A program made the position numbers and the translations under genes. Shown one piece after another: positions 13,243 to 60,883 of a stretch of 64,000 nucleotides of DNA. Source of the stretch: Bugula neritina (taxonomy: Eukaryota > Animalia > Bryozoa); contig OZ037770.1 in the NCBI GenBank assembly GCA_964035545.1, positions 3,814,662 through 3,878,661 on the forward strand. The letters are read 5' to 3'. Numbering within the stretch: the first letter of the stretch is position 1; each line of letters begins with the position of its first letter. The notes beneath the pieces were generated by a model. The model was not told the origin of the DNA. It made no database searches and worked only from the letters and a program-made list of their open reading frames with translations.

Positions 13243-13802
13243 ATATATTTTATAAATTGACATCTTATCAGTTTTCACATCTTGTGTATCATGTGAATCC
13301 ACCTTTGATTCATTATCACTGAAGAGGTCAATTTTTGTGAATAAGTGCCTCTAATAACTCTAAACCAGGTGTTTATGGTTTGTGACTTGAAATTTGCTCA
13401 ATTTGGACTCTGACATGACTTGTAACTACTTGATGGTCACCCATCCTAATAAATTTCACAACATAATAAATTACAGGATAATTTAAGACACCTTCAATAT
13501 AGTATAGGCTCTCTTTTTCAGTGGATTGAACTATATATGCCATTTAGACTTAATACTATATACATACCATCTATATTTTAGACTCAGTTTTATATTATAT
13601 GCCAGTTGTTGGAACTTTACATAAGCTAGGAAAGCTTTTCCCTAATGCATTATATTGCTTTTCACATATCATCTCAGCTAGGCCAGCTTTTTCCACATTC
13701 ATTATAGCTACTGCACAATAGCTAACCTTTTTCACTATAGTTTAAAAACACAGAATTTCCACTTATCCACGCACTTACGTCTCACACTTGTAGACTTAAT
13801 TC

Positions 13803-13883
13803 TACATACATACCATACATACCATACATACATACATACATACATACATACATACATACATACATACATACATACATACATAC
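13803..13883. repeat. (CATA)n microsatellite
   Basis: Direct reading. Confidence 0.95.
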
Positions 13884-16800
13884 CTTGGGGGTGGTAGAGG
13901 GTGGTCCTGCTCTGATTTTATTCTCCAGAGGCGGCAAAGGTCGCTCATCAGTTGAGACTGGAACTGTGCGCCTTGGTCAGAGTGTATCTGTTCGGGGAGA
14001 CCGAAGTGACAGAATACATGTTGGTCTAGCACCCTGGCCACTGTCGGGGCTGACCCATCTGGGATAGCCAGAGCGTCCGTCCACCTCGTAAAGTGGTCGG
14101 TTAATACTAAGATCCAACTATTGCCTCTGGGAGTTAGGGGCATGGGTTCAACCAGGTCGACAGCTACTACTTGCCACGGCCTTCTAGCATATAACCTTTG
14201 CCGTCCCGCTTCACCAGGGAGACGGCCATGCTTGCTGGCCTGGCAGAATTTACATTGCTTTACTCTGAGTCGGACATCACGCGCCATATTGGGCCAATAC
14301 CACCGGAGATGCAATTTGGAGATCACTCTCTTGACTCCTGCGTGAGCCTGTTTGTGAGTGTCCCAAATTAACTCACGACATATGGCACTGGGGCAGACCA
14401 CCTTTTTCCTCTCTGGGTGTCTGCCCGTGGCAGCTAGGGAAATGGTCAGCAGACCATCCTGCCCGATCCTCAGCGAGTCCCAATGCTGGCAGAATAGCCG
14501 AAATATGGCGCATCCCTGCCGCAGTTGTTCCTCGCTGGGTCGTCGTCCTTCCTTCTCGGCCCGATATATGTCTGCCACTACCCCAAGCAGCTCTTCCTGA
14601 AACTTCTTCAGCTCCCGGACATTATTGGCCAAAACAGGGTTGGCGCGGAGGTTTTGTACAACCTCCGGGGACTCGTCAACCTTCTGCCTGAGTTGACCCT
14701 GGTCCCAGTCAAACTGTGCTCCGTGGTGAGCCAGTGTTTCCAATTTACATCGCGGGGACCTCCGTCCCTCCTTTCGATGTTGAGACACAGTTTGCAAGCC
14801 CCATCAGGTCAGCGGCTCAAACCATCCGCATTGCTGTGTCTCCTGCCCGGTCGATGTTCGATCGGGTAGGAGAACTCAGCTAGGATTTCGAGCCACCGGG
14901 CGACCTGACTGGACGGATCTGCTCTCTTGCACAAGCAGATCAGGTAGGCATGATTCGTACGCAGCCGAAACTTCCTTCCATAAAGGTATGATCTGAAGTG
15001 CTTCAGTGACTTGATTACTGCCAGCAACTCCTGGCGAGTAGTGCAGTAATTTTGTTCAGTGGGTGAGAGAGACTTGCTGTAGTAAGCTACTACTACTTCT
15101 CGGCCTTCCTGCATTTGAAACAGCACAGCGCCAACATTCTGGTCAGTGGCGTCTGTGTCGAGGATGTACTCCAGAGTGGGGTCTGGGTAGGCCAAGATTG
15201 GTGCCGTCAGTCGGCAACCCTTGAGGCGGTCGAACGCTCCTTGTTTGACCAAGGTCTACTGCCACGTCACTCCCTTTGCGGTGAGCCGGTTTAACGGCTG
15301 TTCTGTCCCCGCAAAGTCTGGTATGTATTGTCTGTAATACCCTACCAGACCCAAGAAAGCCCGGAGTCCAGTCAAGTCTTGGGGGGTTGACCCAGTCCTC
15401 TACCGCCCGTACTTTCTCGGGATCCATTGCCACGCCGTTTCGACCGACAACTTCCCCCAGGTACTTGACCTCCGGCTGCAATAGAGCGCACTTGGAAGGT
15501 TTTAGCTTCAGACCGGCACCTCTGAGTCTTTCAAAAACCTCTGGCAGATGACTGACGTGTGTCTCGAAGTCTGAGGAGATCACGATAACATCATTGAAGT
15601 AGATCAGCAGTGTTTTCCAGTGGAGTCCGCTGGGGACTTGCTCCATCAGCCTCTGAAAGGTGGCCGGGACAGAGGTTAACCCGAAGGGCAGCACCTTCCA
15701 TTTCCACAGTTCGTCCCGTGTGATAAACGCCGCCTTCTCCTGGGCGTCGGAACTCAGAGGAACCTGCCAGTAACCGCTCAACAAGTCTAACGTACTGAAG
15801 TACTTGCTGTCGGCTAGGGCATCCAGTGATTCATCAATACGAGGTAGAGGGTAGGCGTCCTGTATGGTTACGCTATTGAGCTTGCGGTAGTCCACACAGA
15901 ACCGCCAACTGCCGCCTTTCTTCTGGACTAATACGACCGGCGAGCTTCACGCACTGTGGGCTGGCTTGATGAGGCCGCGGTCCAGAAGATCCCGGACTCG
16001 TCGGCTGACCTCCTTCTCCGGCCCAAACCTGCGTGTGGGTTGCCGAATAGGGACCGTTCCTGCAGTCAGCGGTATCTCAAATCTGACAGCTCCAGTCAAT
16101 CCCACGTCGTGATCCCCGCTACTGAACTCATCACCGTAGTTGCCTAGCACCTTCGCCATAACCTGGCGTTCCTCGTTGCTCTCACAGCCACCACAGGCTG
16201 TCTCATATAACTCCCAGATGTGTGTTGGGACAGTCTCTCGCCTCTTTTTCAGGCGTCGAGGGGGTTCCTCTGTCGGATTTCCCAGCGACGGGCCCATGTC
16301 CTCCTCTTGGACAGAGTGGAACCGGTCCAGCATAGACCCAGCTGGTAGCTTAATGGACTCAGTAAAGGGGTTTACACACTGCACTAAGATCTCTCTTTGC
16401 TCAGTCAGTTGGTTTAAACTGCTGGCAAGTTGGATTCTTTTGTGCGCCTTCAACTACCCTGAGTCCAGAGATCCGGTTATCATTCACTCTGCAGTGAATA
16501 GTAGCCGGGAGCGGCCTGGTTTGGTACAGTTTCGCACCACCTGCACGCCTCCCACTAAGGGGTGGCCAAACTTGTCGACACAGGCAAGTTCTCGCCCGGA
16601 CATCTCCATCGCAGACTTGCTAAAGTCGATGTGACATCCATGCCGTTTCAGGAATGGCATCCCGAGGATGGCGTCCTCCTTGAGCTGACTGACGAGAAAC
16701 GTCTCTTGGATCGTTTGATCTTGGACGCGTCCCGTCAGCTCAATTATACCGTAGAAGGGAATGCACGACCCGTCAGATAGGGTGCCACACTACCCCTCGT

Positions 16801-19150
16801 ACGGTTCCATCTTGCCCCTGACCCTAGCGCTGAGGGTGTCGAAGAGTTGGCGACTTATGAGGTTCGTGGTAAAGCCCGAATCAAGTAGGAAAGTAACAGC
16901 TCTGCACTCTATTTTGCCGGGCGAGAAATAGCTGTTCTAATGGGGCTGTACCTGTACTCGCTCTATTCGTGCTTTACTCTCGCAGGGAGCACCTCCCTCG
17001 CTTTAGGTCGCGAAGGAGGTGGTTTTGGATGGTGGTAGTTTGTCCTTGGAGGTGGGGAGGCTAAGTTTCCAGTTGCCTGTGCTGGTTCTATTCCGGATTC
17101 TCAGGCTGGAAGCCCGTCGAATCGATTGTGGAGTGGCATGGAGAAGGTAACAGCGGGGCGGAGCCCCTTACCCGTCCGCCGTGGCTGTTGCCACTCTTGG
17201 TTGTCGGCACGCGGTACCCGTCTGGGTAACCTACGTTTCCTCTTCTCTGGGGGTTCATCGCCGGCCCGCAGGAGGCGGGACCATCTGCGAGCCGCGGTAG
17301 TTTAACCCTGGAGCTAGGAGAGGGCAATATCTGCGGAAATGTCCTTGGTTTCCACAGTCCCAGCAAAGACTAACTGTTTCCCCCGGTGGCGGCGATGGCG
17401 GCTGCAGAGGCTCATAGGCGGTACCTACTAGAGTTTGATGTGTCAGTGTTGCTATCAATTTAGCCAACATGTCGGTCAGTTTGGCGACCTTCAATGCGGC
17501 AGTTAACTGTGCCACGGCAGCGGTCGCGGAGGGTTTCGCCTCCCGCTCGGCTGCCGTGTTCGTGGGCTCTATCTCCACTTGGCGGGAGTTCCCGCGATTT
17601 TTATGCATCTGGTTTGCCAAGAGATGAGCTTCCCCTTCTGCCAGAGCACTTTCAACTGTGGTAACTCTCTTAGCTAGAAATTAGTGGTAGAGTCCCAAGT
17701 CGTAGACAGACTGTACAAAAGCGTCAAGAGTATACTTCGCACGGTTAGCTTGAGGCAGATCGCTATACGCAATCTGTGCCAGCTTCATGACTGTGGTGGT
17801 ATGTTCTTGTAGCCAGGTGTGGGGATCACGCTGCAGCCTTTGTAGATGGGCCCGGGCATCAATAACAGAGATGCTGAAGCGGGCCCGCAGAGAAGGAAAG
17901 ATACTATCGATGTCTGGGCCTAACTCATAGGGCTTGGCCTAGTTCATCAATGACATTCTGAGCTTCAGCAGGGCCACCCTAGGTGGCCACTGGGCGACGT
18001 CGATTACGCCGCTAAACTCTTGAATGAATTGCTTCACTTCTTCTTCGCCCGTGAATGTGGGCGCCTTCAACCGCTAGCGGTCCTTGTTCAGCTCCCGAGG
18101 AACTCTTCGCTCTTCTACCACATGATTCACAGAAATAACATCATCTTTACGCTCACCTTCTACTGGCTGTGGTTGCGTTCCAGCGTTTTCACTCTCCATC
18201 TTGGATGTGCACTATCTCACTGCTGCCACCACTGTTATAATTTTCAGTTTTGGGTTGTGTGCAATCCAGAGAGTCTATTTATTTACTAGAGAACTTCACC
18301 AGGATAAGTCGAGTTAATATGAGTATATTTCACACACAAGAATACATCACAAAAACTATACAAATACATTCAGTCAATTGCTACGTTCATACAATTCAAC
18401 ACTCTATTCTTAACTAAATAACTGCGGGATACTAAAATATGGAAAATCCACAATTACAGGGGCGATGAAGGTTACACTGTTTGTCGGCTCTGCCAACAAC
18501 ACTGTGGGTACACCTCCCGCAGCACTCCGTCACGACCTTCTGTCTTTGTGGGGAGTTTAGCTACCACAGGGAATATATACTAAGGCACCAACGTACCATG
18601 AATTGTTTCCAAGGGAATCCTTATGACGTGGATGAAGCCTCCTACCTCACATTCCTCGATCTCATACGACCGTTCATCTCAGACTCCGCTCGGCTAGAGC
18701 GTCTTAACCAGGGACTTTCTGCTCCCCGGCCCATCACCCCTGGACTCACTACGAAGCCTCCCAGATATCTGAAAAACTCCCCTTGATCTATCCCTCGTGT
18801 CTTACTACAATGCATCAAGATAAGCCTTACAAACTTCCTCTTTTTTCCCCTCCTACAGACCGAAAGAGACGGTGGCAGCAACCTTCCCTCCACGTTCCTC
18901 AGCGTTGGCCCGCAACTTGCGGGAAGTAGAACTTAGAGCCAACAAACTCGAACAGGAGGCACATCAGCTTGCTCCTAAGGTTAAAGAGGCAGCAAGTGAG
19001 TTATGATCACTAGAAGAGTCCATATCCCAGCTCAAACGAGCCGTCAAAGAATAAGATAATATTCCCCAACCCGCCACCAACTCCCTACTCAAGGTGACCT
19101 ACTCCGCTCCATGACAAACTGGTGCTCAATAGGTGATATCGGAATATAAC
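13884..19150 (-). mobile_element. Decayed Ty3/Gypsy element (5' LTR, PBS, gag, protease, RT, RNase H, integrase), 3'-truncated
   Basis: LTR end at 18233 followed on the minus strand by PBS-like TGGTGGCAGCAGTGAGAT. Gag knuckle CWDCGNQGHFRRYC; protease FLLDSG near 16880; RT DYRKLN...YPLPRIDE...LDLLSGYWQ with YxDD decayed to YFND; RNase H LDTDA...NYCTTRQELLAV; integrase AVDLV...HSDQGAQF. Many frameshifts and stops. Outer LTR boundary (about 18476 or about 19150) uncertain. Confidence 0.88.
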
Positions 19151-20104: not shown

Positions 20105-22186
20105 TTAAGAGTTTTCTTCTCTACTAAGCCCATCGAAGCCAGGAAACAGGTAAAGTCTTTTACGGAGAGGAAGAGTCTTCCAGATTACAATCAAATTCCT
20201 GCTTCTCTCTGAATCTTCATCTGGATACAGTTTCTTAACTAGTTTAGTCTGTACCTGTAGAGTAAGTAATGACTAGTAAGATTGTTCATCAATTCACTAT
20301 TATAGCTGTGATAAAAGGTAAACTTCAGCTTTTAGAATGTTGTATCCCACTTGTAACAAATATGAACAGCAAGCACTTTGGGATTTGTCTACCGCAGTCA
20401 TATCATATAGCATTCAGCAGTACAGTGGCACTAGTATATTTGCAAACTACAAGAACATATTGACAAGGAAGAGAAACTATAATCAATATAGTGAGCCAAT
20501 ATATGCTAAAGGAATTGTAGGAGCAAAAACTACAAGTTAAACTAGAGAAAACTAGGAAAGACATTCTGTTACTAAAACTATAGTGGATATTTTTTTTAAA
20601 GGACAATAGGGTTTAAACATAGAAATGAATAAAATGATATGATGAGAAATAATATTTTAATTTCTTAAATAAAAGTTGAACTAGCCAAAAAGGTATTGTG
20701 ATTTTTAAACTTTTAAAGTTGAAATAGTTTGTGATTTGTAAAGCCACCTGCTTGAAAATGGTGTAGAGATCACGGTGACAGGCATGTTTGTAGATTGAAG
20801 ATACTAGAGCTCTAATCAGAGGAGAGCCATACTCAGGATGTCTCTTTGATGCTAAAATACAATTAAGTGCAACCAAAATCTAGGTCTATAGCCAGACCAA
20901 GTTTAACAGGTTTTAGTTATGGCATAGGCCTATCATATTAAAAATCTCCAAGTTCTGGAACACATTTTACTCTTTTCAGTTTAGAAGTTATTAGAATCAA
21001 AGCCTTTACAAAATGCGGGGATGATACAAAATCGGTAAACCACATCTTATACAAGGTACAACAGCTCAGACAAACTTATAGCCAATCACTGTCTCTTATT
21101 GTACTTACAGCAGATGTTACTCTTCAGAACAAGAAGATTATCAACATCCAGTCTTGCCATACATTCCTCTACTTTATATTCTGGTGGTGAGACAGGTCTG
21201 ATGGGTCTTATTACACTGGGTGTTTCAGGATATACAATATCATCATCAGATTCAGAATGTGTAGAAGAGACAGCTTCAGTTTCTTCTCCTTGAGCTGCTG
21301 CAAGACCTGATCTGTCTGAATTCACCTCAATGTCTGCTGCAAAACACATCTAGTTATCAGGGAAGTAGGATAGATCAAAACATCCATTTTAGCAACAAAG
21401 TCGCCTAACCAATTTTATATGACACATTTCTGAAGGTATTCCATATTTTTTGTAAAAAATCATCTTAATGAAACAAAGAAGTTTTGACTACTGTGTGACC
21501 ACTCAAATAACTGTGTCCGTTTTTATTACAAAACAATATTCACCTTCGCTGCAAGCTTCTATGATGACAACTGTAGGTTTAGGCTTTAAACTTAAAGGAG
21601 CGAGCATATCATAGAAGTCTGTAAGGTTGACCTTCTCAAGGTCAGTTCCATAGATACAGTTATCTTCTCCACCATGAGTCATAATAATCAGTATTTGACA
21701 ACCCAAGCCATTGTTTTTTTCTCCTCTTATCTCAGACTTCACAGCAGACATCATTTCCTACAAATTTGGAAATAACTATAATTATGTTGAATAATTGATA
21801 CAAGGTTATGATAACTAAATAAAAGAAATTTTTCCAACTAGCAAAAAACAATATTTTGACCAGCAATAAACATGATTTGGGTTTTTTATTCAGGCCATAT
21901 TTGAAACATTGATAAACTAAATAGTTAGTGACTGCGTCAATTTTTAAAACAAGTGTCAGGTTTCATATAGATAAACTGATTGAATACTATTGCTTTCAGT
22001 CTAACAATATTATACCTCTGCCTTTAAGTCTGTGTGTGTCTCAACATCAAACTTGAGAGATCTCAACATGACAGACACGTTCTCAACATCAGCATCTGAA
22101 CCTTCCCTGCATAAGTCTGGTCTTTCAACAAAGTTCTTGTTTCTTATTATCAGAGCTTTTCCTCTCTCTCTGGTCATACTGAACAC
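20105..22186 (-). CDS. caspase (peptidase C14A) domain, 5 exons, C-terminal part of the ROCO gene
   Basis: [19 protein letters not shown]...[11 protein letters not shown]...[12 protein letters not shown]; [11 protein letters not shown]; [12 protein letters not shown]; acidic inter-subunit linker; DNLLVLKS; [16 protein letters not shown]; ends [23 protein letters not shown] (TAA 20105-20107). Exon lengths 171/214/228/104/150 are phase-consistent. Confidence 0.9.
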
Positions 22187-25100
22187 CTGCATGGATACAA
22201 TTTTCAGACAATCGCATACAGTAGTGACATACCAGTATGTATGTCTACAGCATATTGTGAAGCACACCAAGAAAAATAATTACAATTATTCTAGAGCACA
22301 AGATGCCATTTGGAGCTTCAAAGTTGGAAGTCTCATAGAAAGCAGTATAACACTCTCTTGCAAAACCAATTTTTTATTTTTATGCCAGGTTTTAAGTTCA
22401 TTACTTTTTAGCTAAGTTGAATAAAAAAATTTTGTTTAAAAGATCCATTGTCAGCTTTACCAACAAAACATTTAAATATTCAATTAAGTGTTAATTGGTA
22501 TTTTGGCACGAGTCATTCAGGATATGATTTAATGAGGTTACAAAATACAGGTTATTACGCTGCATGATTATACTTTATTGAAAATTGCTTCTATTTAACG
22601 TTAAGTTTTTACAAAACAAGCATGTATTTGCAAGGCTGTAAAACTAAATAAGGACAATTTATGGCTATAATAAAATTTGTTTGCATATAACACTTTACTG
22701 GCCTTAAAATAGACCATGGTCTAATTTATGTAAACATAATTTTTAAAACCAAACTATCCGCAAAACATTCACTTAGCATACAGATGCAATTGATTGCAAT
22801 AGAACATTATGGTAAATTCAACTTTTAGCTTAAAGGTCACAAAAGAAATCATACTATAAAATGTTTCTCCACTAGGATTACTCTATGGTCATAGGAGTTA
22901 CTAGGAAATCTCAACCCTTTATCCCAAGCAATTCCTCTGATCTCTAATTACAACTCCTTCAGCCTTCAGGTTCTCTTAGCCTCTGACTTCCCTATAAGGA
23001 GTACTTCTACTGCTACTACTACTCTTCACTAAAGTCAAAGGAGCCCACAAAAAATTGCCCCACCTCCACCGGAATTCAAATCGCAGAAGTCTAGCTTTCA
23101 AGCATGCAAGGCAGGATAAACATCACACCACAAGGACTAATAAGTAATATCCACACAACAGATGCCTCCTAACCATGACAACCAATTGAACCCAAACTAA
23201 TAAAAGCAGAGTGGAAACTATTATGGCTAAACCAGAACCTACAAGTATAGTAAAATGATGGAATTTTAAAATGTGCATGCATTCGGATTAATTGATTTTT
23301 GAATCTAATTGAACAACTGCACGTGACAATCTAGTAAAAGGAGTTTTTGGAAACTGAAATACTCTAATGGGTGGAGAAAGGAGAGCTGCTATAACTTGTG
23401 TTCATCAACTGATAAATTCACCTTTTCAGTGTTTGAAAAGAGTTGTTTTATCCTTGAGTTGGTTGTTGGCTTTAGTTCCAGTTGTACCAACTTCATGTCT
23501 TCTTCATTCTCTTCATCAGGGTACAGATTGTCATCATCTTCAGAGAGATTACTCAGATCTTCATCATTTAACTCATCTACGATCACATGATTGGACAGAT
23601 TATTGCCAAAATTTGAAACCACAAACTGCACATCTTGCCTAGACAGGAGTAGAAGCAATTAATTTTAAAAGTCACAATTAGATATGATTTGTAGGGAAAT
23701 GTAGGGCAACATTTGCAAAGCCTATAATTTTACCAATACTGCTGGTACAAAAAGTAAGTTCTGTCTAAAGATTTTACCATTTGATTTGTTCTGCTCTCTT
23801 CGAAGTTTGAGCTCAGAAAGGAACTTCTTCAAATGAATTGTTTCTGCTTCAGAAAAAGTCTCACCTGAACAATACAGACAGAATTAGTAACATTAAAACT
23901 AGATGAAAGGCATAATTAGAAGAATATGTTATATAATCAAAAGCGTATGTTTCAAGTTTGCACATTTATAAGTTAGACTGAAAGTTTATTAAAGTAACTG
24001 CATGTGTAGTTTGCTAACATCCATCTGTTATTGAAATTCATTAATGTCTAGAAAAAAATATTAGATATGATTTGTTAGTGTAAAAAAAATATTTGAAAAC
24101 AGCTTAGAAAGAAAATCAAAAATGAATCATAATTATGTGTAGACATACATGGATGAATTAAAGCACTGGGTATCGGTTCATCATTACACAATATCTTTGA
24201 AGATCCATGACACTTCTTGACATCTGGTGGCAGTTGGCTTTTTAAAGAACGGAGACACCATTTAGGATGCAGGAACCTTTTAGGGCAAGAAACCCCCAGT
24301 ATGATGCAGTGAGCACAGATGCAGGCAGTAACTGGTCGACTAGCAGTCCAAGTTTCCATGACATGTTTGAGAATGTTGTTTGTGGCTGAAATGAGTTTCT
24401 TCCACATCTTGGAAATGTGAGGAGCATCGGATGAAACATAGAGTAAGACTCTTCTAGAATCATAGTCATGTGTCAGCTGTGTGTATATTTCATCTTGATA
24501 GACATTAGCTCCATTTCTCTTCACCTTCATTGTAGCAAACTCTTTAGAAAACAGTTCTAGCAAACCAACTGTCATTTGATGGTAGACATGCTGCGGCAAA
24601 GCCAGACCCTTGAACTTTACCTCGGTGTGAAGGACCATATCCTCTGGTGAGGTGTATGACACACTGTAATGTTCCTTAGCAAACTGAGGGGTTATAAAGT
24701 AGGGTTCATGGACATCATTTTCCAAAGGGCCATACAACAAACGGAATGTTCTAAGCAAGCAAACAGCAATCTCAACATCATGACAGCTTTTAAATAAAGT
24801 TTCCTTTGCAATCAAATATGTTAGAAGAGATTTCATCATTAAGCCAGTTGTTTTGAAGCAATTTACAGACTCTTCAAATTCTTCTGTTTCAATTCTCAAC
24901 CCTTCTCTGGAAATGCATGGTTGAAACTGGTCAACTCTCCTCTGCCAAATATTTGGATCATGATGATACAAGACACAGAGTAGTTTGGTTACTTCTGTGA
25001 TCTTGTGAAATATGTACGGTTTGAGTGCTTCAATATTCTTATACCACAAGACTTTACCGCAGTCATGCATGTATGTGAGAATAGTATCCAGCTGATCTTG

Positions 25101-28100
25101 CTCCACCTCAAAGCCTTCTTTTGTCAATTCCAACAGAATAAACCTGAAAGAGCTAAATGCTCCGCTTAAAGACAAAACTTTCTCATTCACTTCTTCCCAG
25201 ATCAGTGGCAAAAGCTTAACAAAGTGCTGAATGCTTAGAAGAAGAGAGCTTTTTATTGTTTCAAATTCAGCATACTTGTCTTCTTTTCCAATCTGATAAA
25301 TATCTTCACTAGCAAAAACCTTTCCATTTGATGAGTTGAAATGCTGAATTTTCGAGAAATCTCCATCTGAACTTTTCTCTTCATTAAGAACTTCTTTGCA
25401 AAGCTGTTCAGATATGCTAAGAAAACTTTCTTTAAGCTGTTGAAACTGTTCACTCTGAAACTTATCCTTGTGTGTGAAGACAAGCTTAGGTGGGCCAAGA
25501 GTAGGATGGGCCAGATAGAGGTGAGACATGAAGTCAAAGGCCAACTTTCTGACAGCCTCTTTCTTTGTAAACTCATTTGAAATCTGATCATACTGCTCCA
25601 TGTTGACTACAACTACTGGTACACAATTCTGCCTCAGTGTTAAATGGTATGTGATATGGTAGACCTCCTGGCCTCCCATATCTATGAGACGAAGAATTGT
25701 ACCGTCCACCTCCACCTCTTCCACATTAAACACCTTTGTAGTCTCATCATACTCTGCATTAGGACTTCTGTCAGTCAGAACTCTTTTCCTGTCAGTGTTC
25801 TGTAATGTTCTGATTAGACTGGTCTTACCTGCCATGGTGTTTCCCACCACGACTATTGTAGCAAATGGAAAATTTCTACCAGCACCTTTAGCCAAGTCTG
25901 TGTAGTATTGTCGTACAGCATCTAATCCCCTCTCACAAACTTCTAGTGGAGGAGATGTAAAGGCATAGCAACCCTGTGTTATGAGGAGACTAAGATGTGT
26001 TAGCTGTAGTATCTCAGGATTCAAAGATGTCATGGATCTGTTGTAGGATATATTCAGTATGTACAGATTACTCAATGTACACACTGAAGATGGGAGACTG
26101 GTGAATTTATTCTCTGATATGTTTAGTATCTGTAACTTCTGTAGACTCTGTAACCTAACAATACATTATAGTTCTATGGTCAGCACAAACTAGAGGTAAG
26201 TGTGATCTACTTGTTGTAATAAAGATACAATGATAGTGAAAAATTTATAATAGAACTCAGAATGTAGTATGAAATGGCAGTGAATACAGTGAGCTTATTA
26301 TGTAAAACTCTTATTGTTTAGAGTAGTACAGTAGATAATTGTTATTCTAGAATTTGCCCTTATTGATTTCGTCACAATTGTCAAGTATTATTTTCAAGCT
26401 CTACAATTAATATTTCGAAACATTTACAGCACTACAACTATGAATAATTATTTGGTCAAAAATAATAAATAAGTACCTTATTATTGTCACTTTAGCACAA
26501 TTCCTAACACTACCATAAACAATGCTGTTCTATATAGCATGTAGTTGATTATAACTGCTTACACTGATATTTTATTAGATATGTATTATAATGAAAATTA
26601 CAAAACTAGATAACTAAATTCTGCAGGATATACAGTATCTATAGTATTCATTTGGCAGAAAAACGCCAATTTTTGACTTAGGTTCACAATCCCAGATAAA
26701 GCTTTTTTCTCTCCTGATTATTCAAATATAGGGTCCAAGTAAATGTTTTTAGGTGGGTGTGGACTTTTTATCCTTGAGAATTTTGAGAAATTTAAGATGG
26801 GTGCTAGGCACCAGACGATTCTATATAATTTAAATGTACCTACCCATCGGGGAGCTAAATTTAAGGTTCCAATGATTTGAAATCTTTAGAAATTAAACTG
26901 CCTTTATCACGTTCATTATTAAGTAATAGGCAAATTATACCCAAGAGGAACTAGGCAAAATCTTAATCACTCATTTTTTAAAGTTTAACCTAACCTTACT
27001 GGTCTAAATTTATGAAAATTTACTATATGGGGTGATATTTTTATGCTGATCACAAATATGTCAACCAAATAAAGCTGAAGAAAGTTCTGAAAAGTAAAAA
27101 TACAACGTCTTTGTCATATATGAGCTAAATAGCAATTTATTTCAAATTAGCATGCCTATCAAAAAGGTTTGTTGAGCTGCCAATTTGATAGTTATTTTCA
27201 CTTTTAAAACTTTAGCTTTGTTTTTTAACATTAGAAAATGGGTCAAAAAACCTTGATAAAACAACACTATGGCTTCTTAACATAATTCAATTGCTTTAAT
27301 ATTAACACATCATTTATCTAAATATTGATATTTTTGCTTTCAAAAGCTACTTCTACAATCAGCATATTTGACTTTTTCTCTAAAAAAATTGTAAACAAAT
27401 TTTATGAATGAGAATCTATTTCATGCTGGGGGAAGTAATACATCTATTAGAACAGTGGTTCTTTACATTTTTTGATACCAATCTCTTTTTATAAACATTT
27501 ACTATTATTTTCTCCCCGTTTAATGAGCTATGTTGGGTGCACTGGAACACCAATTGCTGAAACTGATTTAGTAGAAGTAGTTCTTTCTACGTTTGATGGT
27601 CTCCCAAAAATTCCAAAGAGAAAAAATTTCCTCAGAATGTGCTAGGTCTGAGAATATAGATGAAAGAGCTGTGAAGAAGTCAGTTTTTGATGAAAGTGTA
27701 ATCACTAGCATGGAAGACCTTGAAAAGATGTTGACTAATATTTCAGAGAGCTCAAGAACAGCAAAAACTGTGGGTCATGCGCTGTATTATACCAATTTTT
27801 ACCATCAACACTTGCATCATTATAGCTGATGGGGAAGAAGACTGGGCCTCACACCTAGCAAGGGAAAAGGAAATGTACATATCTGCGTAGCATGGAGGTC
27901 ATACCACAAGCTGCAAGGATTGAATTCTCAGCTGGTAACCACACAGTGCATCATAAACACGGCCAGCTGGGCGGCATCTGGTCAGACATGATCATTGAGG
28001 TGACCTTTGTGAGATTTGGTCACAGCAAAGGGAAATCATTGGCATTACTACTAAACCTGAATCTCTCAAGGTGTGGGTGTACAGTACTTCTGCATGCAAC

Positions 28101-31100
28101 AAGATATAGTAAGGGCTCAGTGACATCAAAGATGAGTCTTAAATACATGCTTCCACTACTCATAAAGATGATATGCAATTCAATCTGATTCAAAAGACAG
28201 AGAGTGTGTCAAAAGGAAGATTGAACTCTGCAATGACCCTCTTAAAGAAGGATGCCACCCAGTTGCTCTTGTCAATATTGAAACAGAGAAAGTCATCAGT
28301 TATTTAACAATTATTATTGACAATATTTTCGCTATAGGTAAAGCATTTATGCAAGAATTTAAAGTGAACTGGTCAGAGGGGTTAAATCATTCTTTCTCAT
28401 CTAAAGTTAAAGCAATGATATCATCTCAAAACATATTAAGGTTTCTAATACCACTGTGCATGATACTGAAGTCATATATGCCCGAGCCATTGCACTCAAG
28501 CACACTAAGAATTTGGACGCTGACTCATTAATGGCTCATAAACTTGCAGCATTGCCACCTTCTACATTCAAGGAAGCATGAAAAATAAGAGAAGCTAGGA
28601 CCAAGTCAATTCTCAGAAAATCTGTGAAATTTTGAATTTTCAGAACAATCCGCGACAAAATGATAAGAAAATTTCAACCAAGCTGGAGATTCTCTTATAC
28701 AGAACGGCAATTAAAACTACACTAATGTATGGAAATCAGATATGGCCACTGACTCAATGTCACAAATTCTGAGTGTACATATACCTATAGACTTACCGGG
28801 TTTTTCCTAATGATTATACAGGAATGTTCATAAGTGTTCTAGACTGATCAAAGAGATGGGTCATTGTTCATTGTTGTTGTTTTCATTAGTCATGTTAACT
28901 ACTGCCCAGCAATGTAAACAAGGTGTTGCGCAATAATTGCAAAATAACCATAGAAATTCCAATGTTTTGTTTGTTTTGATTTTCTATCTTAATAGTATTG
29001 GCATGTGGAGAATGTTTTCTACTAGAATTTTCTATACCGGAATGCTTGAGAATGTTCTAGAGTTTTTTTTGTTTACTATAGATACTGAGGCAGTTGTGCT
29101 TACAAATCAGTTCATTTTTATAAGTTCATCTGTGCATATCTTACTGGAGGAATAAAGTCTACTTATATTCACAACTCTATTTACTCTCAACTGGATTAGG
29201 AAGCTGTATGCTAATTGTCTAAACACTTCTGACTGCCAGACTTTTTGAACTCGTCACACTGCTACCAACAGTTTTGTGACACTCAAAGACAAAAAGCAAG
29301 ATAAGTGCAACTGAGATGAGAATGCTTTGACACATTTACAATATAGATTGGGACGAATATGTAACAAACAATAGTATAAGGGAGGAAGCCAAAATAGAAG
29401 CCATCGTAATAGACATGAGGAGGAGACCTCTTCAATGGTATGAAAATGTGTGCATAAGAGATAGGGAAGAAGATAATTTAATGGGGGCTGAAATGAAGAT
29501 ACAGAAAAAGAGAAAAAGAGGGAAGCCAAAGAAAAAGGTTAATGGATACAGTGAAGGATGACATACTGAAATGTGGCCTCCCAGATAAAGATGTTGACCA
29601 CAGAATCAGATGACACTCTCTGATAGCGATTGGTGCCCTGCAAAACCACCACCCATCTTGAACCACGACGTACTAGGTGAGAAAGTCTGAGACAAAACCC
29701 TATAATAGACAATTTGCTGCTTTTCCATGGCCTTTCAGGGTGTGATACAGTAGCGATAATGTAACATGTTGGAAAAAGAGTCATATTAAATGTCTTGGTC
29801 CAAAGAAGATGTGATTTCGTGACATTAGTGCTTCTTTTCAGGATGACTGTTCATACAAGCTATCAGGTTTATGCTATGTTGCTACAATTATGCAAAGTGC
29901 TCTTCCATTACATCTACAAGACAAAAGGCCTTGGAAAACCAAGGTCTGAAATGCTATTTGAGATGTGCCTTTAACTTATGTACTTTGCCTCCTACAGATG
30001 AAGCTATTGGACAATGTCACCAGAGCACACCTTCATATGAAACTGCAGCATTAAACCCCTTAAATAACATTGGTGGACAAAAGAGGATCTAATAGAATCT
30101 CTTTTCCCAAAAGGAATAGGAAATGATGTGCTTACATGCACCAGACAGTATTATGAAGTGGATCATTTTACTTAATTTGGTGTACACTCGATGACTAGTT
30201 TTTGGCAATTTTTTACAATTTAGCTGCTAATGTATATAAATTTTCTGCCTTAAACTAATAAAATTTTAACAAATAAAACTTAAAAATTAAGGCTTTTCAA
30301 TTATGCATGATTTTCAATGTTTTTCCTGATCTATTAGTACATTGAGATATTATATGGACAGTGATGGTTCACAAACATATATTCACCTTGTATGACAATG
30401 ACGCAGCACTTAAACGTTGCAAAACCTTCTCCCAGTCTTTTATTGCTATGTATAGTTAGAATCAGCAAATTCTATTGCCCCATATAGTAAGTTTTCATGA
30501 ATTTTGAGCAAACTTTAAAATGTTTGATCATAATCTGCTGATGTGTACTAAATAAATTAAAATGACCAAAATTAATTGAATACTCCTGTGGAAGCCACCA
30601 ATTATGCAAAACAACAAGATATGGCTGTTCTAGTACATCTATCCCATGCACAGAGTTCTGCCCTTGTGAAGCAATAACAGGAGTGTGCTGCAATGAACTA
30701 GCATTTCTAACATATGTTAATGATGGAAAAAAAGGTGTTCAATATGAACATGAGCGAAAGTTAGTCACATCTGTATGAGTATATATATGTTCTAGTTTAA
30801 CTTTAGCTGAGCAATATCCTTCTGTATCTTTTTCACTTTCTATTCACTCACAATAAGCAATGTTTTTCTTCATATATCTGACCAAATAATTATTTAAAAA
30901 CCTTGTATCACTTCTCTGTACCATATGTGATGTTTTATTGAAGCAATGACGATTTTTAAGCTGGGCAACATGTCTCTTGGCTCTTTTCTTTCATCTTTTT
31001 TTACTGGCAGAGCGCATATTTATTCCAAAATTGCAAATCAATTTGAACCATCAAAAAATTTTGTTTTTGCAACATATAATAATTATTATATACTTTATGC

Positions 31101-34100
31101 CTACAAAATTACGATTTTTTCATAATTGGCGGCCATCTTAGATTTCTCAAAATGCTCAAGGATGGCTGGTTCACACCCACCTGAAAACATTCACTTGGAC
31201 CTTCAAGATAAAAGATCAAGGGAGAAAAAAACTTTATCCGAGATTGCTATATAATACAGTTATAATCAAATTATAATTAGAGAAACAAAGCTATCCTGTA
31301 TAAGTCTGCATGAAGTACTAAAAAAATATGTCGGGGAAAACACACTACTCTGTATCTTTTGCTCTACCATCATAATGTAATTTAACTGTGTAACTATTTT
31401 GCTGAAACAAATGAGTTAACAAATATCTTAAATGGTAAGTCTATAGTGACACACAAACCTCTCAGGTAGATCAGATAATTTACAGTTCCCCATATTCAAC
31501 TCTTTGAGTGATGTGAGTGATGACACAACTTCTGGTACTGTGTTGACAGGATTCCATCCTATGTGTAGTTTCTCTAACTGAGTCAGCTGACATAGACTGT
31601 AATATAAAGTGAATGATGAATGTAGACTGACTTATACATTTTATAATTGCAAAAATTGCTATAACTACCATATAATTATGACGGATACGACAACTACATG
31701 TACCATCACCTTGTTTCTTCACTACACCTTTATTCAACTTATCATGACACTGGACTACTATATAGGTGAAAATATATTAATGTACCATAATGGTATACAA
31801 CTATTTAGGGAGCAGCCGTGGTCTAGGGGTTAGAGCGTTTGCCTAGTAAACACGAAGGTCATGGGTTTGAGCCCAGACAAAGGCCATTAGATGATAAAAG
31901 GAAAAGCATCCAGTCATAATTGCTCCTGTGCCTCATTTAAACAAGTCCTTAGCCCGATTTATACAGGGATAGTGACTATAAATTTGCGTGAGAAAAAAAT
32001 GGTATACAACTATTTAATTATTATACTCAGTAAACACAAGTAAACTAGATATAATGACTTATAATCAATTACACTTTTTAACAGCGTAAGGATATACTAT
32101 AATACAATGATCGACATACCTTAAAACTATGGGGTTTTCACGTACATTATTGCAAACCATTACATACGTCATATATAGATGACTTCAAAAAAATACATTT
32201 TTTATTCTCCCACTTTATGTTGGCACACAATAATGTTAGTTGGTAAGTATATAAAGATGCCAATTATTGAATGTTTTTAAACAACTCATTAACTGTAATT
32301 GTAAAGTTAGCACTGAACATAATTTAATTCAAGCAGTAAAAGTAACATAGTGTAATGAATACGTAATAGTTAATCAAGCATTCAGCGTTGCGTTTAACAT
32401 AACGTTTCACTCAAATAGGCTATCACATCACTTGATTCCCGCCTACGCAGCGACTGCTAGTTGTAAATTCACTAATTAGATTGCAGCACGCCCTCGCCCA
32501 TTGGCTGTGGCTTTAAGCTTTGGCAGCCCGGATGTTTCAGTGCAGACATTGAACCTACAGCTATAGTAGAATAGTAGCTGCTAGCGATGCAATTTCATCA
32601 CATCGATAACAATCAATTTTAAATGATATAATTCATAAAATATAAATTAATTTAAATTGGAATTAACTTAAAGAAGCACGGGTTAGTTTTGTCTTTCAGT
32701 ATTTGTAATAATTTGAGGCTTTCCTTAAGTATTTTTATCTATTTTTAGCTAGATAAGAATAACTATTTGGTTTATTAAACATGTTTATAAGTTTGACAAT
32801 TTTTAGAATGCTAGTGCGGTCAGTGTATGATAGAATGTATGGCTATGTGTTTACTTTTTAATAGATTTCTCATAAAATTACTACTCTAAAGGCAGGCTCT
32901 CTAGTGATTGATCAGTTTGGCACTAGATAGTATAAATATTCTAATTGGCAGTTAAAGCCTTATTTTTACACTTACATGCAGTATTTTAATGCAGCTACTA
33001 ATTCAAGTCAACATTGAATATAAGTTTTAATCCCTGTCTTTGAGCTATACATTCATTTTTACTAATTGTGTCAACATTTGTCTAATTGCAGTTATCACCA
33101 AATGTCATTTTTATTATAGTTTGATATTTTTTAGTAGACCTGTAATACCGTTTCATAGAAACAAACTCACCCTAGCTAGCCACTAAAAGAAGGCAAAAGG
33201 TGATTAATTCAAGATCTGTATACATGTTTGAATATTTTGCAACTTCATGAATAATTTTCTGTTTGTTTTATTTTAAAAACATGTTATAATTGCATATATT
33301 AATAACCTACTTTTACAGTTTTTTACGGCAGTTGGAATAAGTAAAAATAAAATACTAACACCAACACCATGCAGTACAACTCATTTATAGTTAGTGGTGA
33401 TGCTACAGTAAGTGACACAAACCTCTCAGGAAGAGTAGATAATCCACAGCTCATCAGATTCAACTCTTTAAGTGACGTGAGTGATGACACAACTTCTGGT
33501 ACTGTGTAGAGAGGATTATCTTCTATGTCTAGCTTCTCTAACTGAGTCAGCTGGCATAAACTGTAATATAAAGTGAATGATATATATTCAGTGTGCACTA
33601 CCATAATATTTTATATTATATTAACCTATTGTCTTAAACCAGGTAAAATTATATATACACTATATGCAACTTAACTACCAAACAACTTATTGTAGCATAT
33701 AGTACATGTTGCAAAGCATGAAAATGTAGCAGTTTATTATTATAGCATAAAAGTATTCAATTATTGTAGTCATTGAATGCTAAAAAACTACAACTAACTG
33801 CTAACTATTAATTACACTTTCATATCACAAGAATATAATATAATGGCATACTTTAAAATTATGTTATTTTTACAATACTATGAACTATTACATATAATAT
33901 ATTCCTTTAAAAAATGCATTTCATGTTTCTCAATTATATAATGACATACTGTAATACTACTTGGTAAGCATAATATGAAGATGTCAAATATTGAATGCAT
34001 GTTTAAAAAAACAAAAACAATGACACAAACCTCTTAGGTAGATTAGATAATTCACAGCTCCTCATATTCAACTCTTTAAGTGATGTGAGAGATGACACAA

Positions 34101-36949
34101 CTTCTGGTACTGTGTCGAGAGGATTCCATCCTATCTCTAGTTTCTCTAACTGAGTCAGCTGACATAAACTGTAATATATAGTGAATGGTATATGTAGTCT
34201 ACTGTATCATATGATGACATATTCTGTAGCTACTCAGTTATAATGTAAATTATGTAGTAAACAATTTTGTTGAGACAGGGCACAACAGAAAGATTATATT
34301 ATGGCATGTTATAGGTGTAATGGATGCCCTGTGTAGAGTTGACTGATTAGATTTGTTTATAAGGTTAGCCTGTTAGTTTAGTTATAGATAAAGGCTACTC
34401 TACAATGTAATGCTATATGGCATGACTGTAATAAATAGTATACAATATTATAGCTGATCTGACATAAATTAGACCCAATTTGTCATTTTGATAAATCTGT
34501 TATTTTTGGATTTAGCGTCATATAATATATATGTATGCCTCCTACTTGTACATGTATGTGATATAGTACTATGCTACACATATACTGTTTAGTATGTTAC
34601 CTTTGGTACTCAACTATATGAAACACGCTTATATTGATGATATAATATCCATAACAGTAAAAACAGTTTTGTACTGTTTATAAGTTCTACAACTGTTTTG
34701 GCTTGTGTAGATACAATGTTTTGCTTATTACTATAGGTTTATATACTGCATGATAATATTATAAGTAAGAATGTGAGTGAAGACAGTTAACACAACTAAA
34801 TTTATTTGACAGCTATACCGCAGAAATACTTACTTGTCTAGACTTGCTCTGTCAGTCAGGTTAGAAACACATAGACACAGGGCTTTACCAGCAATCTCTC
34901 CAATGTTGTTTGGAATTCTCCCTTCCAGTTTGAGATATGTGATATGACAACTTCCAACTTCACGTTTTACCTCAGCAGTATTGTATGATTTGGTAATAGC
35001 ATACTGTATATCTGACCAGTCTACGAGAGACTGACCAGAATGTCTGAACCAAATTCTTATATTCTCTGTAACATTATACAGTGACAGTGTAATTACTACA
35101 CAGTGCCAGCAGGTGTTGCCAGGCAGCTTTAGGTTTACGAAATAAATAGATCACTGATTCCTGAAAACAACCGTTTTATTTAAAATCTTTGAAATTATGC
35201 TGCTTCGGTTTCAATAAAAGTCCCCCCGAGTAATACTAGCATATTATATTCTTTGCTATACAATTTTAAAAAAATAGTTTGAATGTTGATTTAAAGCAGC
35301 CAAAATTAAGCCGTGTTAGTATTTTATATTCACTAATAATTGGTCCAAATACCAACATAAGTTAAAACTTTCTATATCTGACACTGCGTACTCCCTATAC
35401 CCTATCAGTTACACAGATGACAGCTGTACAGGATGATCATAGATATACTCGAACTAGCGTAGTTAGAGCACTTTCTGAATTGTGGAATCTAGAGCTATAT
35501 AAGTATTTCAATGTTTCTCATATTTCAACTATAGAAAAAAGCATACCAATATAGAAAGGTTTCTGAAAAGTCTTGTCACAATAACATTCTTGTCAATTTA
35601 GATGAAACATTTGCTAGTTTTGCTCAAATAAAAAGAAAATTTATGCATTGAAAACCAATATAACTGATTGCATTCGAAATAATATTCAAATGAATGCCAA
35701 GTATACTGCATATAAATACAAATAGTGCGATAACATTGGCATACACCATGTGCTACTCTCCTTCCCTCAATCGCCTTTGGACCATGTAGTTTACTTACTG
35801 TTCTACAAACAAACCGGCTACATATCTCTATCCTTAACTGACATTTGCAGGCATGCTGCACCATTATTGTAACTAATGAAAGATTTTTACCTGCACCTCC
35901 AGCCAAATCTGTGTAGTATTGTCGTACAGCATATAATCCTCTTTCGCAGACTTCTAGTGGAGGAGATGTAAAGGCATAGCAACCCTGTGTTATGAGAAGA
36001 CTAAGATGTGTTAGCTGTAGTATCTCAGGGTTCAAAGATGTCATGGATCTGTTGCTGGATATATTCAGTGTGTGCAGATTACTCAATGTACACACTAAAG
36101 ATGGGAGACTAGTGAAGTCATTAAATGATATGTCTAGTATCTGTAACTTCTGTAGACTCTGTAACCTAACGATACATTATAAGTGTATAGTCAGCAAACT
36201 AGAGGTAAGAGAGATCTACTAGCTGTCATGAATATACAAAGATATTAAAGTAATAGAAGAGATAGTAAGAAGTAGCAGTGACTACAGTGTGATTATTATA
36301 TAACACCCTAACTATTTGGAGTAGTACAATAGAAAGGTGATATTTTAGAATTTGCTCTTTGCCCTTTGCCCCATGCATGCATGAGGTATTACAGAAGATA
36401 TGTCAGATAAAACACAATACTCTATACTATATTACTTTACATTCATAATGAATAGTTTGACTGTGTGACTGTTTTGCTGAAATGAATGAGTTCACAAATA
36501 TCTTGAACAGTAATTCTATTGTTACAGACAGACCTCTCAGGTAGATCAAATAATTTACAGCCCCTCATACACAACTCTTTAAGTGATGTGAGTGATGGGA
36601 CCACCTTTGGTACTGTGTTGAGAAGATTCCAATTTGTTTCTAGTCTCTCTAACTGAGTCAACTGACATAGACTGTAAGGTAAAGTATATGATATATGTAG
36701 TTTGACTTAGACAGAGGATAATTATAAGAGTTGCTAAAACTACAAAAAATTATGAGAGATAAGATAACTACTATATCAAGTTGATTGTCTCTTCACAACA
36801 GTTCTATATTCACCTTATCATGACACTTGACTAATATGTGAATATATAACAGTGTATTATAATAGAGTACAAGAATTCAACACTTAGTAAATACTAGTAA
36901 ATTAGAAATGACTGCAATAACTGTTAATCACGTTTTTTATAGCATAGGA

Positions 36950-37029
<80 letters not shown>

Positions 37030-37072
37030 ATATATATATGTATATATATGTATATATAAATGTATATATATA

Positions 37073-37126
<54 letters not shown>

Positions 37127-37269
37127 TACATATAGACATATATACATATATACATATATACATTTATACATATATACATATATACATATATACATATATA
37201 CATATATACATATATACATATATACATATATACATATATACATATATACATATATACATATATACATAT

Positions 37270-37349
<80 letters not shown>

Positions 37350-40300
37350 CTATATATATATACATATGTGAGTGTGCGTGCGTGTGCACGTGCATGTGTC
37401 TGTAACTTTAATAAATTTAATTTCATATTTTTCAATGACATACCATAATAATACTTGGTAAGCATATAGAGTTGTCAAAGATTGAATGTTTTAAACAATA
37501 CAAAACCTGTGACACAAACCTCTCAGGTAGAGTAGATAATTTACAGCTCTCCATATCCAACTCTTTAAGTGATGTGAGTGATGACACAACATTTGGTACT
37601 GTGTTGAGAGGATTCCATTCTATGTTTAGTTTCTCTAACTGAGTCAGCTGACATAGACTGTAATATAAAGTGTGTGATTTATATGTAGTCTGCATTAATA
37701 TATTATTTTATACAATAATCACATTTGGTTTTCAACCAGGTAAAACTATATACAACCTTACTACCAAGCAACTTATTATAGCATTGTACATGCAGAGCAT
37801 GAGAAGTTAACAGTTTATTATAATAGTATACAAGTATTCAATTATTATATATACTCAGTGTGTGAATACTAATCAACTATACAACTGCTTACTATTATTT
37901 ACATTTTTATAGCATAAGAATATATAAAGACATACGTTAAATTCGGTTATTTTCACAATATTACGGACCATATTTCATATAGAAATGACAAAAATTGCAT
38001 TTCACATAATATTTCTTCAATTATATAATGACATGCCCTAATTATACTTGGCAAGGAACTATTTTAGGGTTTTAACCTGTGACAAACAAACCTCTTAGGT
38101 AGAGTAGATAATTTACAGCTCCCCATATCCAACTTTTTAAGTGATGTGAGTGATGAGACAACATCTGGTACTGTGTTTAGAGGATTCCTTCCTATGTCTA
38201 GTTTCTCTAGCTGAGTCAGCTGACACAGACTGTAATATAAAGTGTATGATTCATATGTAGTCTGCATTACTATAATATTTTATACTATATTCACATTTTG
38301 TTTTCAACCAGGTAAAACTATATACAACTTAATTACCAAGCAACTTATTGTAGCATTGTACATATGCAGAGTATGAGAAGTTAACAGTTTAATATAATAG
38401 TATACAAGTATTCAATTATTATATATACTCAGTGTGTGAATACTAATCAACTATACAACTGCTAACTATCATTTACATTTTCATTGCACAAGAATTTATA
38501 ATGGCATAATTCAAAATTATGTTATTTTCACAATAATACAGACCAAATTTCATATATAATTCAAAACATTTGCATTTCACATATTTTTCAATTATATAGT
38601 TATACAAACTAATAATACTTGGAAGGAACTATTTTAGGATTTCAAGTATTAAATGTTTCAAACAATACAAAAACTGTGACAAACAAACCTCTCAGGTAGA
38701 GTGGATAATTCACATCTCTTCATATTCAACTCTTTGAGTGATGTGAGTGATGACACAACTTCTGGTACTCTGTTGAGAGGATTCCAGCCTATGTCTAGTT
38801 TCTCTAACTGAGTCAGCTGACACAGACTGTAATACAAAGTGTGTAATATATGTAGTCTACTGTATCATATAATGACATATTCTGTACTCTGCTATATAAT
38901 GTAAATTACGTAGCAAACAATTTTGTTGAGACAGGGTACAGCAAAAAAAAGCTATTATCTCATGCTGTAGGTGTAATGGGTGCCCTGTGTAGAATTGAGT
39001 GATTAGATGTATTTGTATAAAGACATCCTGTAAGTTTAGTAGATAAGGGCTACATCTACAATGTATTGCTAATATATAGTATGATTTATAATAATAAATG
39101 GTTTACTTTGTTATAGCTAATCTGACACAAATTAGCATGTATTTAATATTCCGAAAATCTTGTATTTTTAAGTATATGGCTACATATAATATGCTTATAT
39201 ATATTATGTGTTACAAATATAAACCTTCTGTATAATCCTACATGTATACATGTACTACATATAATATGTTACTTCTGTATTCAACTACATAAAACATATG
39301 TATTAATTTAAGATAGCGTATGTAACACTACAGACAGTTTCCCACTGTCTAATTTCTACAACTCGTTCAGCTGGTAGAGATACAGTGTTATACATATTAC
39401 TATAGCTTTCAGTATATATTTTCCTAGAATGTTGTTTAGAGACATAAAAAAACTGCCTATGCACAACATACTTTGCATCTGTTTAGTATCTCGTAATTAG
39501 ACATAAAAAAATCAAAGCCAATTATAAGGTAAAAGACCATAATACTGTACTATCATTGGATAGTTCTTCATCAATAAACAGGTAGTCGCCAGTGGTGGAT
39601 ATGAACCCCTCCTAGATGTTTCTCGTATTTCTTCCTCAAAAAACATTTTCATTAAGCCAAAAAGAAATAACAATACACCTCTTTAGTTGACACTTTTTAA
39701 TTTCTGACTGATATTTCACCTTATTTCCAATTATAATTAACTTTTAACCGGCACTTTTCTTTGTAGTAATTCCTACCCTTTAGACTGTGTACTTTGAAAT
39801 GAGTCTGTTTTACTTGTTACATAAAGTATAGTTGCACTGGCTACAGGTTGACACAAAAGCAAGCCTATCTTGATAAAATCATGCGCAATTGTAGAAACTA
39901 TCGAGGAGTTTGTTCCTCATAATTAGAAATTGACAAATTATTTTTAATCCGTTTAAAAGCATCTGGTTAGGGAAGCATATGCCGTGTTCAATTTGTTATT
40001 CTAGCATTAACAATAACAGAATGCAATAATTATAAGTTTATGAAAGTAATTTGTATTCTTTCTAATTACAAATATAATATTTTAGTATAATATATTGTAA
40101 ATTTATAAGGCTTGCATTAGGAATAACGCAGCTAAAACATCATTTTCCTTAAAGCCTTAAAAATATATAAGTATAACATAATACACTATGCCAATAAACT
40201 TATTAAAGTACCAAGCAAGCTTAGCTAGTTTAAGAAAAATTACACTAGGTAAATTACCATTATTTATAGAATGCTTGCTGATATTAGCTTTTGATGTAAT

Positions 40301-60796: not shown

Positions 60797-60883
<87 letters not shown>

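Follow-up and report, generated by a model that had tools for sequence, protein, structure and literature searches.

We analyzed a 64,000-nucleotide window of the genome of the bryozoan Bugula neritina (assembly GCA_964035545.1, contig OZ037770.1, forward-strand positions 3,814,662 to 3,878,661), which carries on its minus strand a gene that joins leucine-rich repeats (LRRs), a Roc-COR GTPase module, and a caspase in one reading frame. The spliced model runs from 35065 to 20105 (window positions) and consists of 12 exons, every one bounded by AG and GT, which together give 1,252 codons with a sole, terminal stop. A preliminary description of this DNA had proposed phase-consistent, stop-free minus-strand exons from the LRRs to the caspase, as this frame bears out, and the motifs that it quoted were all found on the minus strand, those of Roc at 25844-25818 (GNTMAGKTS), 25682-25668 (DMGGQ), and 25475-25464 (THKD) and those of the caspase at 21679-21671 (THG), 21559-21548 (EACS), and 20158-20138 (RLYLFPG). 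Its gene extent of 20105-35065 is right at the 3′ end, where the stop codon lies, but wrong at the 5′ end, since 35065 is a splice acceptor and not a start.

The first exon of the model, the N-cap exon (34834-35065; 232 nt, phase 1 to 2), is the first coding exon in paralogs (58 copies). It is followed by three LRR cassette exons of 138 nt (34031-34168, holding two LRRs in phase 2-2; 33423-33560; and 31459-31596) and by a large exon (24149-26154) encoding the last LRRs and their cap, the Roc GTPase, COR-A, and COR-B. Linker exon A (23778-23864; 87 nt, phase 1-1, probably helical) and an acidic linker exon (23422-23576; 155 nt, phase 1-0) lead on to five caspase exons. Exon 1 (22016-22186) carries an S1-pocket Arg in REGSD; exon 2 (21544-21757) carries the catalytic His (THG) and Cys (EACSE); exon 3 (21109-21336), placed by frame, alignment, and an RNA joint from exon 2, encodes an acidic, Pro-rich inter-subunit linker and the start of the small subunit; exon 4 (20748-20851) carries the SKRH Arg and GS; and exon 5 (20105-20254), placed by frame and alignment, ends the gene with RLYLFPG and the stop codon.

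Pfam and structure searches were run exon by exon, with a Watersipora protein as the stand-in for the whole-chain fold. By exon, Pfam returned LRRs, Roc, weak COR-A and COR-B, and Peptidase_C14. Roc scored 32.7 bits, above the cut-off (E 1e-7), and the P-loop, G3, and G4 motifs by which a ROCO protein is recognized are all present. The COR-A and COR-B matches fell under the cut-off, and the position of COR directly after Roc is shown by the predicted model, which matches LRRK1, the Chlorobium tepidum Roco protein (CtRoco), and the COR-only structure 3DPT. The AlphaFold model of the large exon has a mean predicted local distance difference test (pLDDT) score of 91.9, and its best Foldseek matches, over the LRR-Roc-COR part, were LRRK1 (E 3e-24), CtRoco (7e-22), and LRRK2. 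The P-loop Lys and DMGGQ are retained in all 28 stop-free paralogs. By its motifs and predicted fold, then, the protein is a ROCO protein, for which GTP binding and hydrolysis and a nucleotide-dependent monomer-dimer cycle are predicted. Among named relatives, proteins of Watersipora subatra match the large exon best (32-40% identity), and JGI contigs match it at 81-89%. In a quick tree, which contained no MFHAS1 sequence, bryozoan-type Roc-COR formed its own well-supported, long-stemmed clade; its place among other animal and bacterial ROCOs was not settled there, so we claim no donor. No signal or membrane segment was seen in the protein, and no Pfam match to a death-fold domain (CARD, PYD, or DED) was found in the scanned window exons or in the full-length Watersipora relatives. 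The central domain is Roc-COR and not NACHT or NB-ARC; the protein is therefore not a member of the NLR/STAND group and is at most an analogue of it.

The caspase has the His-Cys dyad of a p20/p10 domain (THG and EACS). Exon 1 (E 3e-8) and exon 2 (E 3e-5) both lie above the Peptidase_C14 cut-off, the PDB matches of exon 2 include CED-3 and caspase-8, and the caspase domain of a Watersipora relative best matched CED-3, caspase-3, and caspase-9. Where the domain had been called complete, this applies to the dyad but not to the canonical QACxG pentapeptide, which is found in Watersipora; it reads EACSE in this copy and E/H/Q-x-C-S-G in most paralogs. Of the residues that form an Asp-selecting S1 pocket (two Arg, Gln, and Ser), alignment shows the two Arg and the Ser in place, with Glu where Gln is expected. 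EACSE, a shortened exon 2, and a shortened exon 4 are all found together in one JGI relative (exon 4 is likewise 2 residues below most paralogs at JGI locus L035), and Ser replaces the Cys in the paralog whose Roc-COR is most similar (97%). The inter-subunit linker is 71 residues long, and the COR-caspase tether of ~65 residues is of low confidence in a Watersipora predicted model. Judged by these features, the caspase is of metazoan type, with a noncanonical pentapeptide in this copy, and is predicted to cut after Asp and to process itself.

The junction between COR and the caspase bears on whether these exons form one gene or two adjacent ones. The acceptor of the acidic exon at 23576 is in phase and conserved in paralogs; the obvious AG at 23638 is neither and was rejected. 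An AG at 24048 would open a terminal exon with a stop six codons past COR, as expected if Roc-COR and the caspase were separate genes and the fusion a modeling artifact, but the linker exons downstream are conserved in frame, and we disfavor it. When paralogous linkers were parsed by simple patterns (16 loci read, 14 not parsed), the COR-to-linker join was stop-free in 16 of 16, 7 of which were also stop-free into caspase exon 1, and linker exon A (84-93 nt) and the acidic exon (143-155 nt) vary in length such that the frame is kept. Contigs from an RNA-type run splice 23419 to 22183 (CT..AC), joining the acidic exon to caspase exon 1, and 21549 to 21331, joining caspase exon 2 to exon 3; depth in this run was zero in seven intron bins that a second run covers. 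No listed read crosses from COR to the linker, and certain Watersipora models (P0040 and P0043) end before the caspase, as two genes would allow. Caspase exons nevertheless follow even the short Watersipora models, being found downstream of Roc-COR at two further loci there, and the RefSeq models XP_067947674.1 (1,419 aa) and XP_067948342.1 (1,413 aa) contain LRRs, a Roc-COR-like region, and a full caspase in a single chain.

The same linkage recurs across the Bugula genome. A census of its 216 Mb scored at least 66 Roc-COR copies among 154 candidates, and each of the 66 scored copies has caspase exon 2 downstream on the same strand, within 8 kb for 63 of them (coordinates were paired by hand), which is not chance. 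With this linkage, the conserved linker frame, and the one-chain models, it is very improbable that Roc-COR and caspase are separate genes. The single chain proposed in the preliminary description is thus supported by the open frame, paralog phases, family RNA joints, and Watersipora models, and we conclude from these sequences that the LRR-Roc-COR-caspase gene is a real in-frame fusion that is conserved in two or more bryozoan genera and has undergone strong expansion. At two JGI loci, Roc-COR is 81% identical and caspase exon 2 only 42%, so that two caspase types accompany similar Roc-COR regions, which suggests exchange of effectors between copies. Separately, clusters of N-cap and caspase exons with few scored Roc-COR matches lie on contig C1 (32.7-33.7 Mb) and contig C7 (5.07-5.11 and 7.58-7.73 Mb); these may be more divergent members or LRR-caspase genes without a GTPase.

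The 5′ end of this copy differs from those of its relatives. Of 33 copies, 32 carry an ATG start codon in the N-cap exon, five bases past the acceptor, and this copy alone has ATA (35060-35058). The 5′ end and the integrity of this copy are less certain than the preliminary description implied. Upstream on the same strand lie two partial modules, each composed of LRR cassettes and the truncated start of a Roc exon that encodes only the LRR cap. The nearer has four cassette exons (38826-38689, 38229-38092, 37657-37520, and 36671-36534; span, 36534-38826) and a cap fragment (35891-36165) whose possible phase-1 donor would join the exon at 35065 in frame. Beyond it are an N-cap exon (58638-58869) with an intact ATG at 58864 and a further, third module (59713-61804) with cassettes at 61804-61667, 61202-61065, and 60502-60365 and a cap fragment at 59987-59713, which runs past the window end. 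Both cap fragments end in a possible phase-1 donor, and their joins to the next N-cap exon are stop-free, a type of junction found at 3 loci only. The ATG at 58864 is the candidate true start of an in-frame form of 1,604 aa, which would be longer if a module beyond the window were used. In the interval 35066-35890, three weak candidates for a short ATG-bearing exon gained no support, and paralogs start within the N-cap exon.

The lost ATG and the in-frame modules upstream leave two readings of this copy: its LRR region is doubled or tripled, or its start is gone. Most likely, the copy is expressed from 58864 or from a start outside the window, as a longer protein that includes the duplicated LRR modules. 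The other course, in which the family works as proposed below and this copy is start-defective or degenerate (a pseudogene in the making, or a decoy), might have been taken if a deletion between tandem neighbors removed the promoter and the ATG then decayed to ATA. ATA occurs in only this one of the 33 copies, the upstream cap fragment breaks ~25 nt beyond the candidate donor, close relatives of this EACSE copy have Cys changed to Ser, and some neighbors contain stops. Even so, 1,252 codons lack a stop or frameshift, as do the 1,604 codons of the longer form over seven more junctions; loss of an ATG is equally allowed in an internal exon; and a start at the in-frame Met of codon 112 would leave 1,141 aa. 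We regard a start-defective copy as unlikely. A paralog ~230 kb away has an LRR cassette (contig C6, 3622407-3622541) identical in protein to that at 34168-34031 and has the cap-fragment junction in common with this copy, pointing to recent segmental duplication. In Watersipora, the relative XP_067945196.1 (P0086) shares the N-cap motif; ahead of it is an extension whose beginning, MGNGQS, looks like a myristoylation signal.

The GTPase and the LRRs differ in how they have changed among copies. The ratio of nonsynonymous to synonymous substitution (dN/dS) was 0.25 for Roc and 0.24 for COR; across 14 LRR cassettes, the concave face reached 1.4 (permutation p 0.007), against 0.97 for the remaining exposed positions and 0.13 for structural ones, and concave dN over overall dS had a bootstrapped value of 2.1 (range, 1.1-3.8). 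These figures are pairwise counts on related sequences and are indicative only; they point to purifying selection on the GTPase and diversifying change on the LRR concave face. In the 63 linked copies in which the catalytic codon could be read (with a codon-free pattern), it encodes Cys in 54, Ser in 8 (two codon types), and Ala in 1, and two residues before it 43 copies have Glu, 13 have His, and 7 have Gln. The nine Roc-linked caspases that lack Cys are at 2638320, 3581570, 3752509, 3936660, 3978177, 4079005, 5401674, and 6131175 on contig C6 and at 8282669 on contig C8. They use TCC, AGC, or GCT, and so Cys was probably lost more than once; they may possibly act as decoys.

Mobile elements surround and interrupt the gene. 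An intronic insertion of ~4.6 kb (26687-31246), with 114-nt inverted repeat ends and Cys-rich coding remnants on the plus strand, is not part of the gene's coding sequence and is a probable decayed DNA transposon. At the window start, a Ty3/gypsy-type pol frame (3-2561, plus strand; reverse transcriptase, RNase H, and integrase) runs off the edge and is followed by a 38-nt tandem array (4269-4735). A second gypsy-like element (~13800-18300, minus strand) is decayed and GC-rich (54%), with pol in several broken frames. By eye, fragments at ~47800-48800 (plus strand), in the 20-kb gap between modules, resemble the reverse transcriptase of a non-long-terminal-repeat retrotransposon, and a 200-aa open reading frame at 62836-63438 (plus strand) resembles the DNA-binding N-terminal portion of a pogo-type transposase.

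Dimerization activates initiator caspases. We propose that the family consists of single-chain intracellular receptors in which a variable LRR solenoid, a Roc-COR GTPase switch, and a caspase without a prodomain, held on a flexible acidic tether, would act in series. Binding of a foreign or damage-related ligand to the LRRs would shift the nucleotide cycle; COR-COR dimers would then form or be stabilized, by analogy with CtRoco in the GDP-bound or empty state; the COR dimer would pair the two tethered caspases; these would cleave themselves within the 71-residue inter-subunit linker; and the active caspases would cleave death substrates, among which might be effector caspases or a gasdermin encoded in this genome. 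An exon-wise search, which gives a lower bound, found three gasdermin N-terminal matches above the Pfam cut-off, on contig C2 (2048552, 4286293, and 4312189), and these are candidate substrates. The role of a variable-ligand sensor, also suggested in the preliminary description, gains indirect support from the concave-face dN/dS of ~1.4, the tandem expansion, and the near-absence of NACHT and NB-ARC matches. We put the probability that ligand- and nucleotide-gated COR dimerization activates the tethered caspase at roughly 0.55; analogies are found in PMC8195603, bioRxiv 2021.06.07.447441, PMC3341825, and PMC5714945.

Several observations weigh against this reading or its extension to the copy in the window. 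CtRoco is a dimer when GDP-bound or nucleotide-free and a monomer on GTP (PMC5714945), so that ligand-on may not equal dimer-on. Besides the ATA codon, this copy has Glu for both the Gln and the Gly of QACxG and two shortened loops (three residues fewer than most paralogs in caspase exon 2 and two fewer in exon 4); of its CSE-type relatives, the two that score closest in Roc-COR have Ser for Cys. Most of the RNA contigs are 85-99% alike, so they are evidence for the family and cannot be assigned to this copy; among the joints listed for the stretch that the read comparison covered, none spans COR to linker A or linker A to the acidic exon, and none crosses a 5′ junction. Finally, an exon-wise profile search of the genome gave one weak partial NACHT match and no NB-ARC match, and the NACHT count is a lower bound.

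The behavior of CtRoco also fits control of the caspase by intramolecular release, in which GTP loading would monomerize Roc-COR and free the caspase or its linker, or a use of the caspase as a scaffold that recruits other caspases. The persistence of nine Cys-less copies in at least three codon forms suggests noncatalytic use, and Gln precedes the Cys by two residues in merely 7 linked copies, with Glu in 43 and His in 13. Most copies, however, keep the His, the Cys, and the S1 arginines, initiator caspases are known to need dimers, and decoys of the cFLIP kind would explain the Cys-less copies equally well, which makes release or scaffolding rather unlikely. The ligand itself might be a conspecific self/nonself signal in colony allorecognition or a developmental cue in zooid regression rather than a pathogen. 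Bryozoans are colonial, and diversifying, clustered LRR genes fit allorecognition as well as immunity, but no membrane or secreted segment was seen and nothing in this analysis links these genes to colony contact; we consider such a ligand quite improbable.

Beyond dimerization-gated activation, a broader proposal is possible but tentative, namely, that the one-chain LRR-Roc-COR-caspase family has largely replaced NLR and apoptosome platforms in bryozoans, with specificity arising from duplication of LRR cassettes and modules, output from exchange of caspase types, and decoys from Cys-less copies, while the GTPase cycle gates the caspase. If so, a GTPase cycle and not a STAND ATPase would directly gate an animal caspase. 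Were the dimerization mechanism true, animals would have a path from intracellular recognition to caspase activation that works by a GTPase rather than a STAND ATPase and was reached separately from the bacterial versions, and the protease would offer the LRRK2 field an on/off read-out for the question of which nucleotide and oligomer state of Roc-COR signals. For invertebrate immunity, these genes, at least 66 in number, make up a family of candidate receptors in a phylum where immune genes have received little study.

The preliminary description knew of no characterized protein with this architecture, which was overstated in view of bacterial LRR-Roc-COR-caspase proteins, a Roc-COR-CHAT protease of Runella, and a ROC-caspase of Owenia. 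The architecture is thus already known in bacteria and glimpsed in one annelid, and the bryozoan expansion was found in no paper; our literature search, which covered few subscription journals, returned no description of the bryozoan family and no test of the design in an animal. Kaur et al. (2021; PMC8195603) described bacterial conflict proteins of the form LRR-AP-GTPase(Roc)-COR, with a predicted role against invaders, in which the C-terminal effector can be a caspase. The domain order LRR-Roc-COR-caspase is the same in Bugula, and fast-evolving N-terminal LRRs, a variable C-terminal effector, and several paralogs per genome are also shared. The bryozoan gene, however, is a spliced animal gene with LRR cassette exons and a protease that matches metazoan caspases; the last point favors an independent fusion over inheritance of the bacterial one. 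Nor is there support for horizontal transfer of the fusion as a whole, the caspase being metazoan-type and Roc-COR its own clade without a shown bacterial donor.

As shown by Johnson et al. (bioRxiv 2021.06.07.447441), the Runella protein cleaves a gasdermin and kills cells. It resembles the bryozoan proteins in the fusion of Roc-COR to a caspase-like protease, but the protease is CHAT there and Peptidase_C14 here, and the bacterial gene is described as lying beside its gasdermin, whereas the Bugula gasdermin matches are on another contig. In a study that did not include bryozoans, Horkan et al. (2024; PMC11463336) mention in passing one caspase of Owenia fusiformis with a ROC prodomain, again a lophotrochozoan animal caspase fused to ROC but a single gene, with no LRR or COR noted and no expansion. 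Candidate immune receptors of the LRR-ROCO type in the brown alga Ectocarpus (PMC3341825, PMC11378527) are like the bryozoan family in that their LRR-Roc-COR genes are clustered and built with symmetric LRR cassette exons and their concave face is under positive selection; there, however, each LRR has a 72-nt exon, in contrast to the 138-nt two-LRR exons here, and no caspase is attached (0 mentions in PMC3341825). Lingula has ROCOs of immune-like architecture, HEPN-LRR-Roc-COR-CARD (P0145) and LRR-Roc-COR with CARD (P0055).

Among other animal proteins, MFHAS1/MASL1, LRRK1/2, and DAPK1 share the LRR-Roc-COR core and its fold, and RefSeq calls the relatives "MFHAS1 homolog"; the bryozoan proteins differ in a structure-based identity of 12-15% to LRRK1/2, in having no kinase or death domain, and in their caspase output. 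The NLR inflammasome and the Apaf-1/CED-4 apoptosome are alike in logic, with a repeat sensor, a nucleotide switch, and a caspase output. Those, however, are ring-forming STAND ATPases that recruit a separate caspase through CARD or PYD, whereas the bryozoan protein, in which no death-fold domain was detected, combines a GTPase with a covalently tethered caspase.

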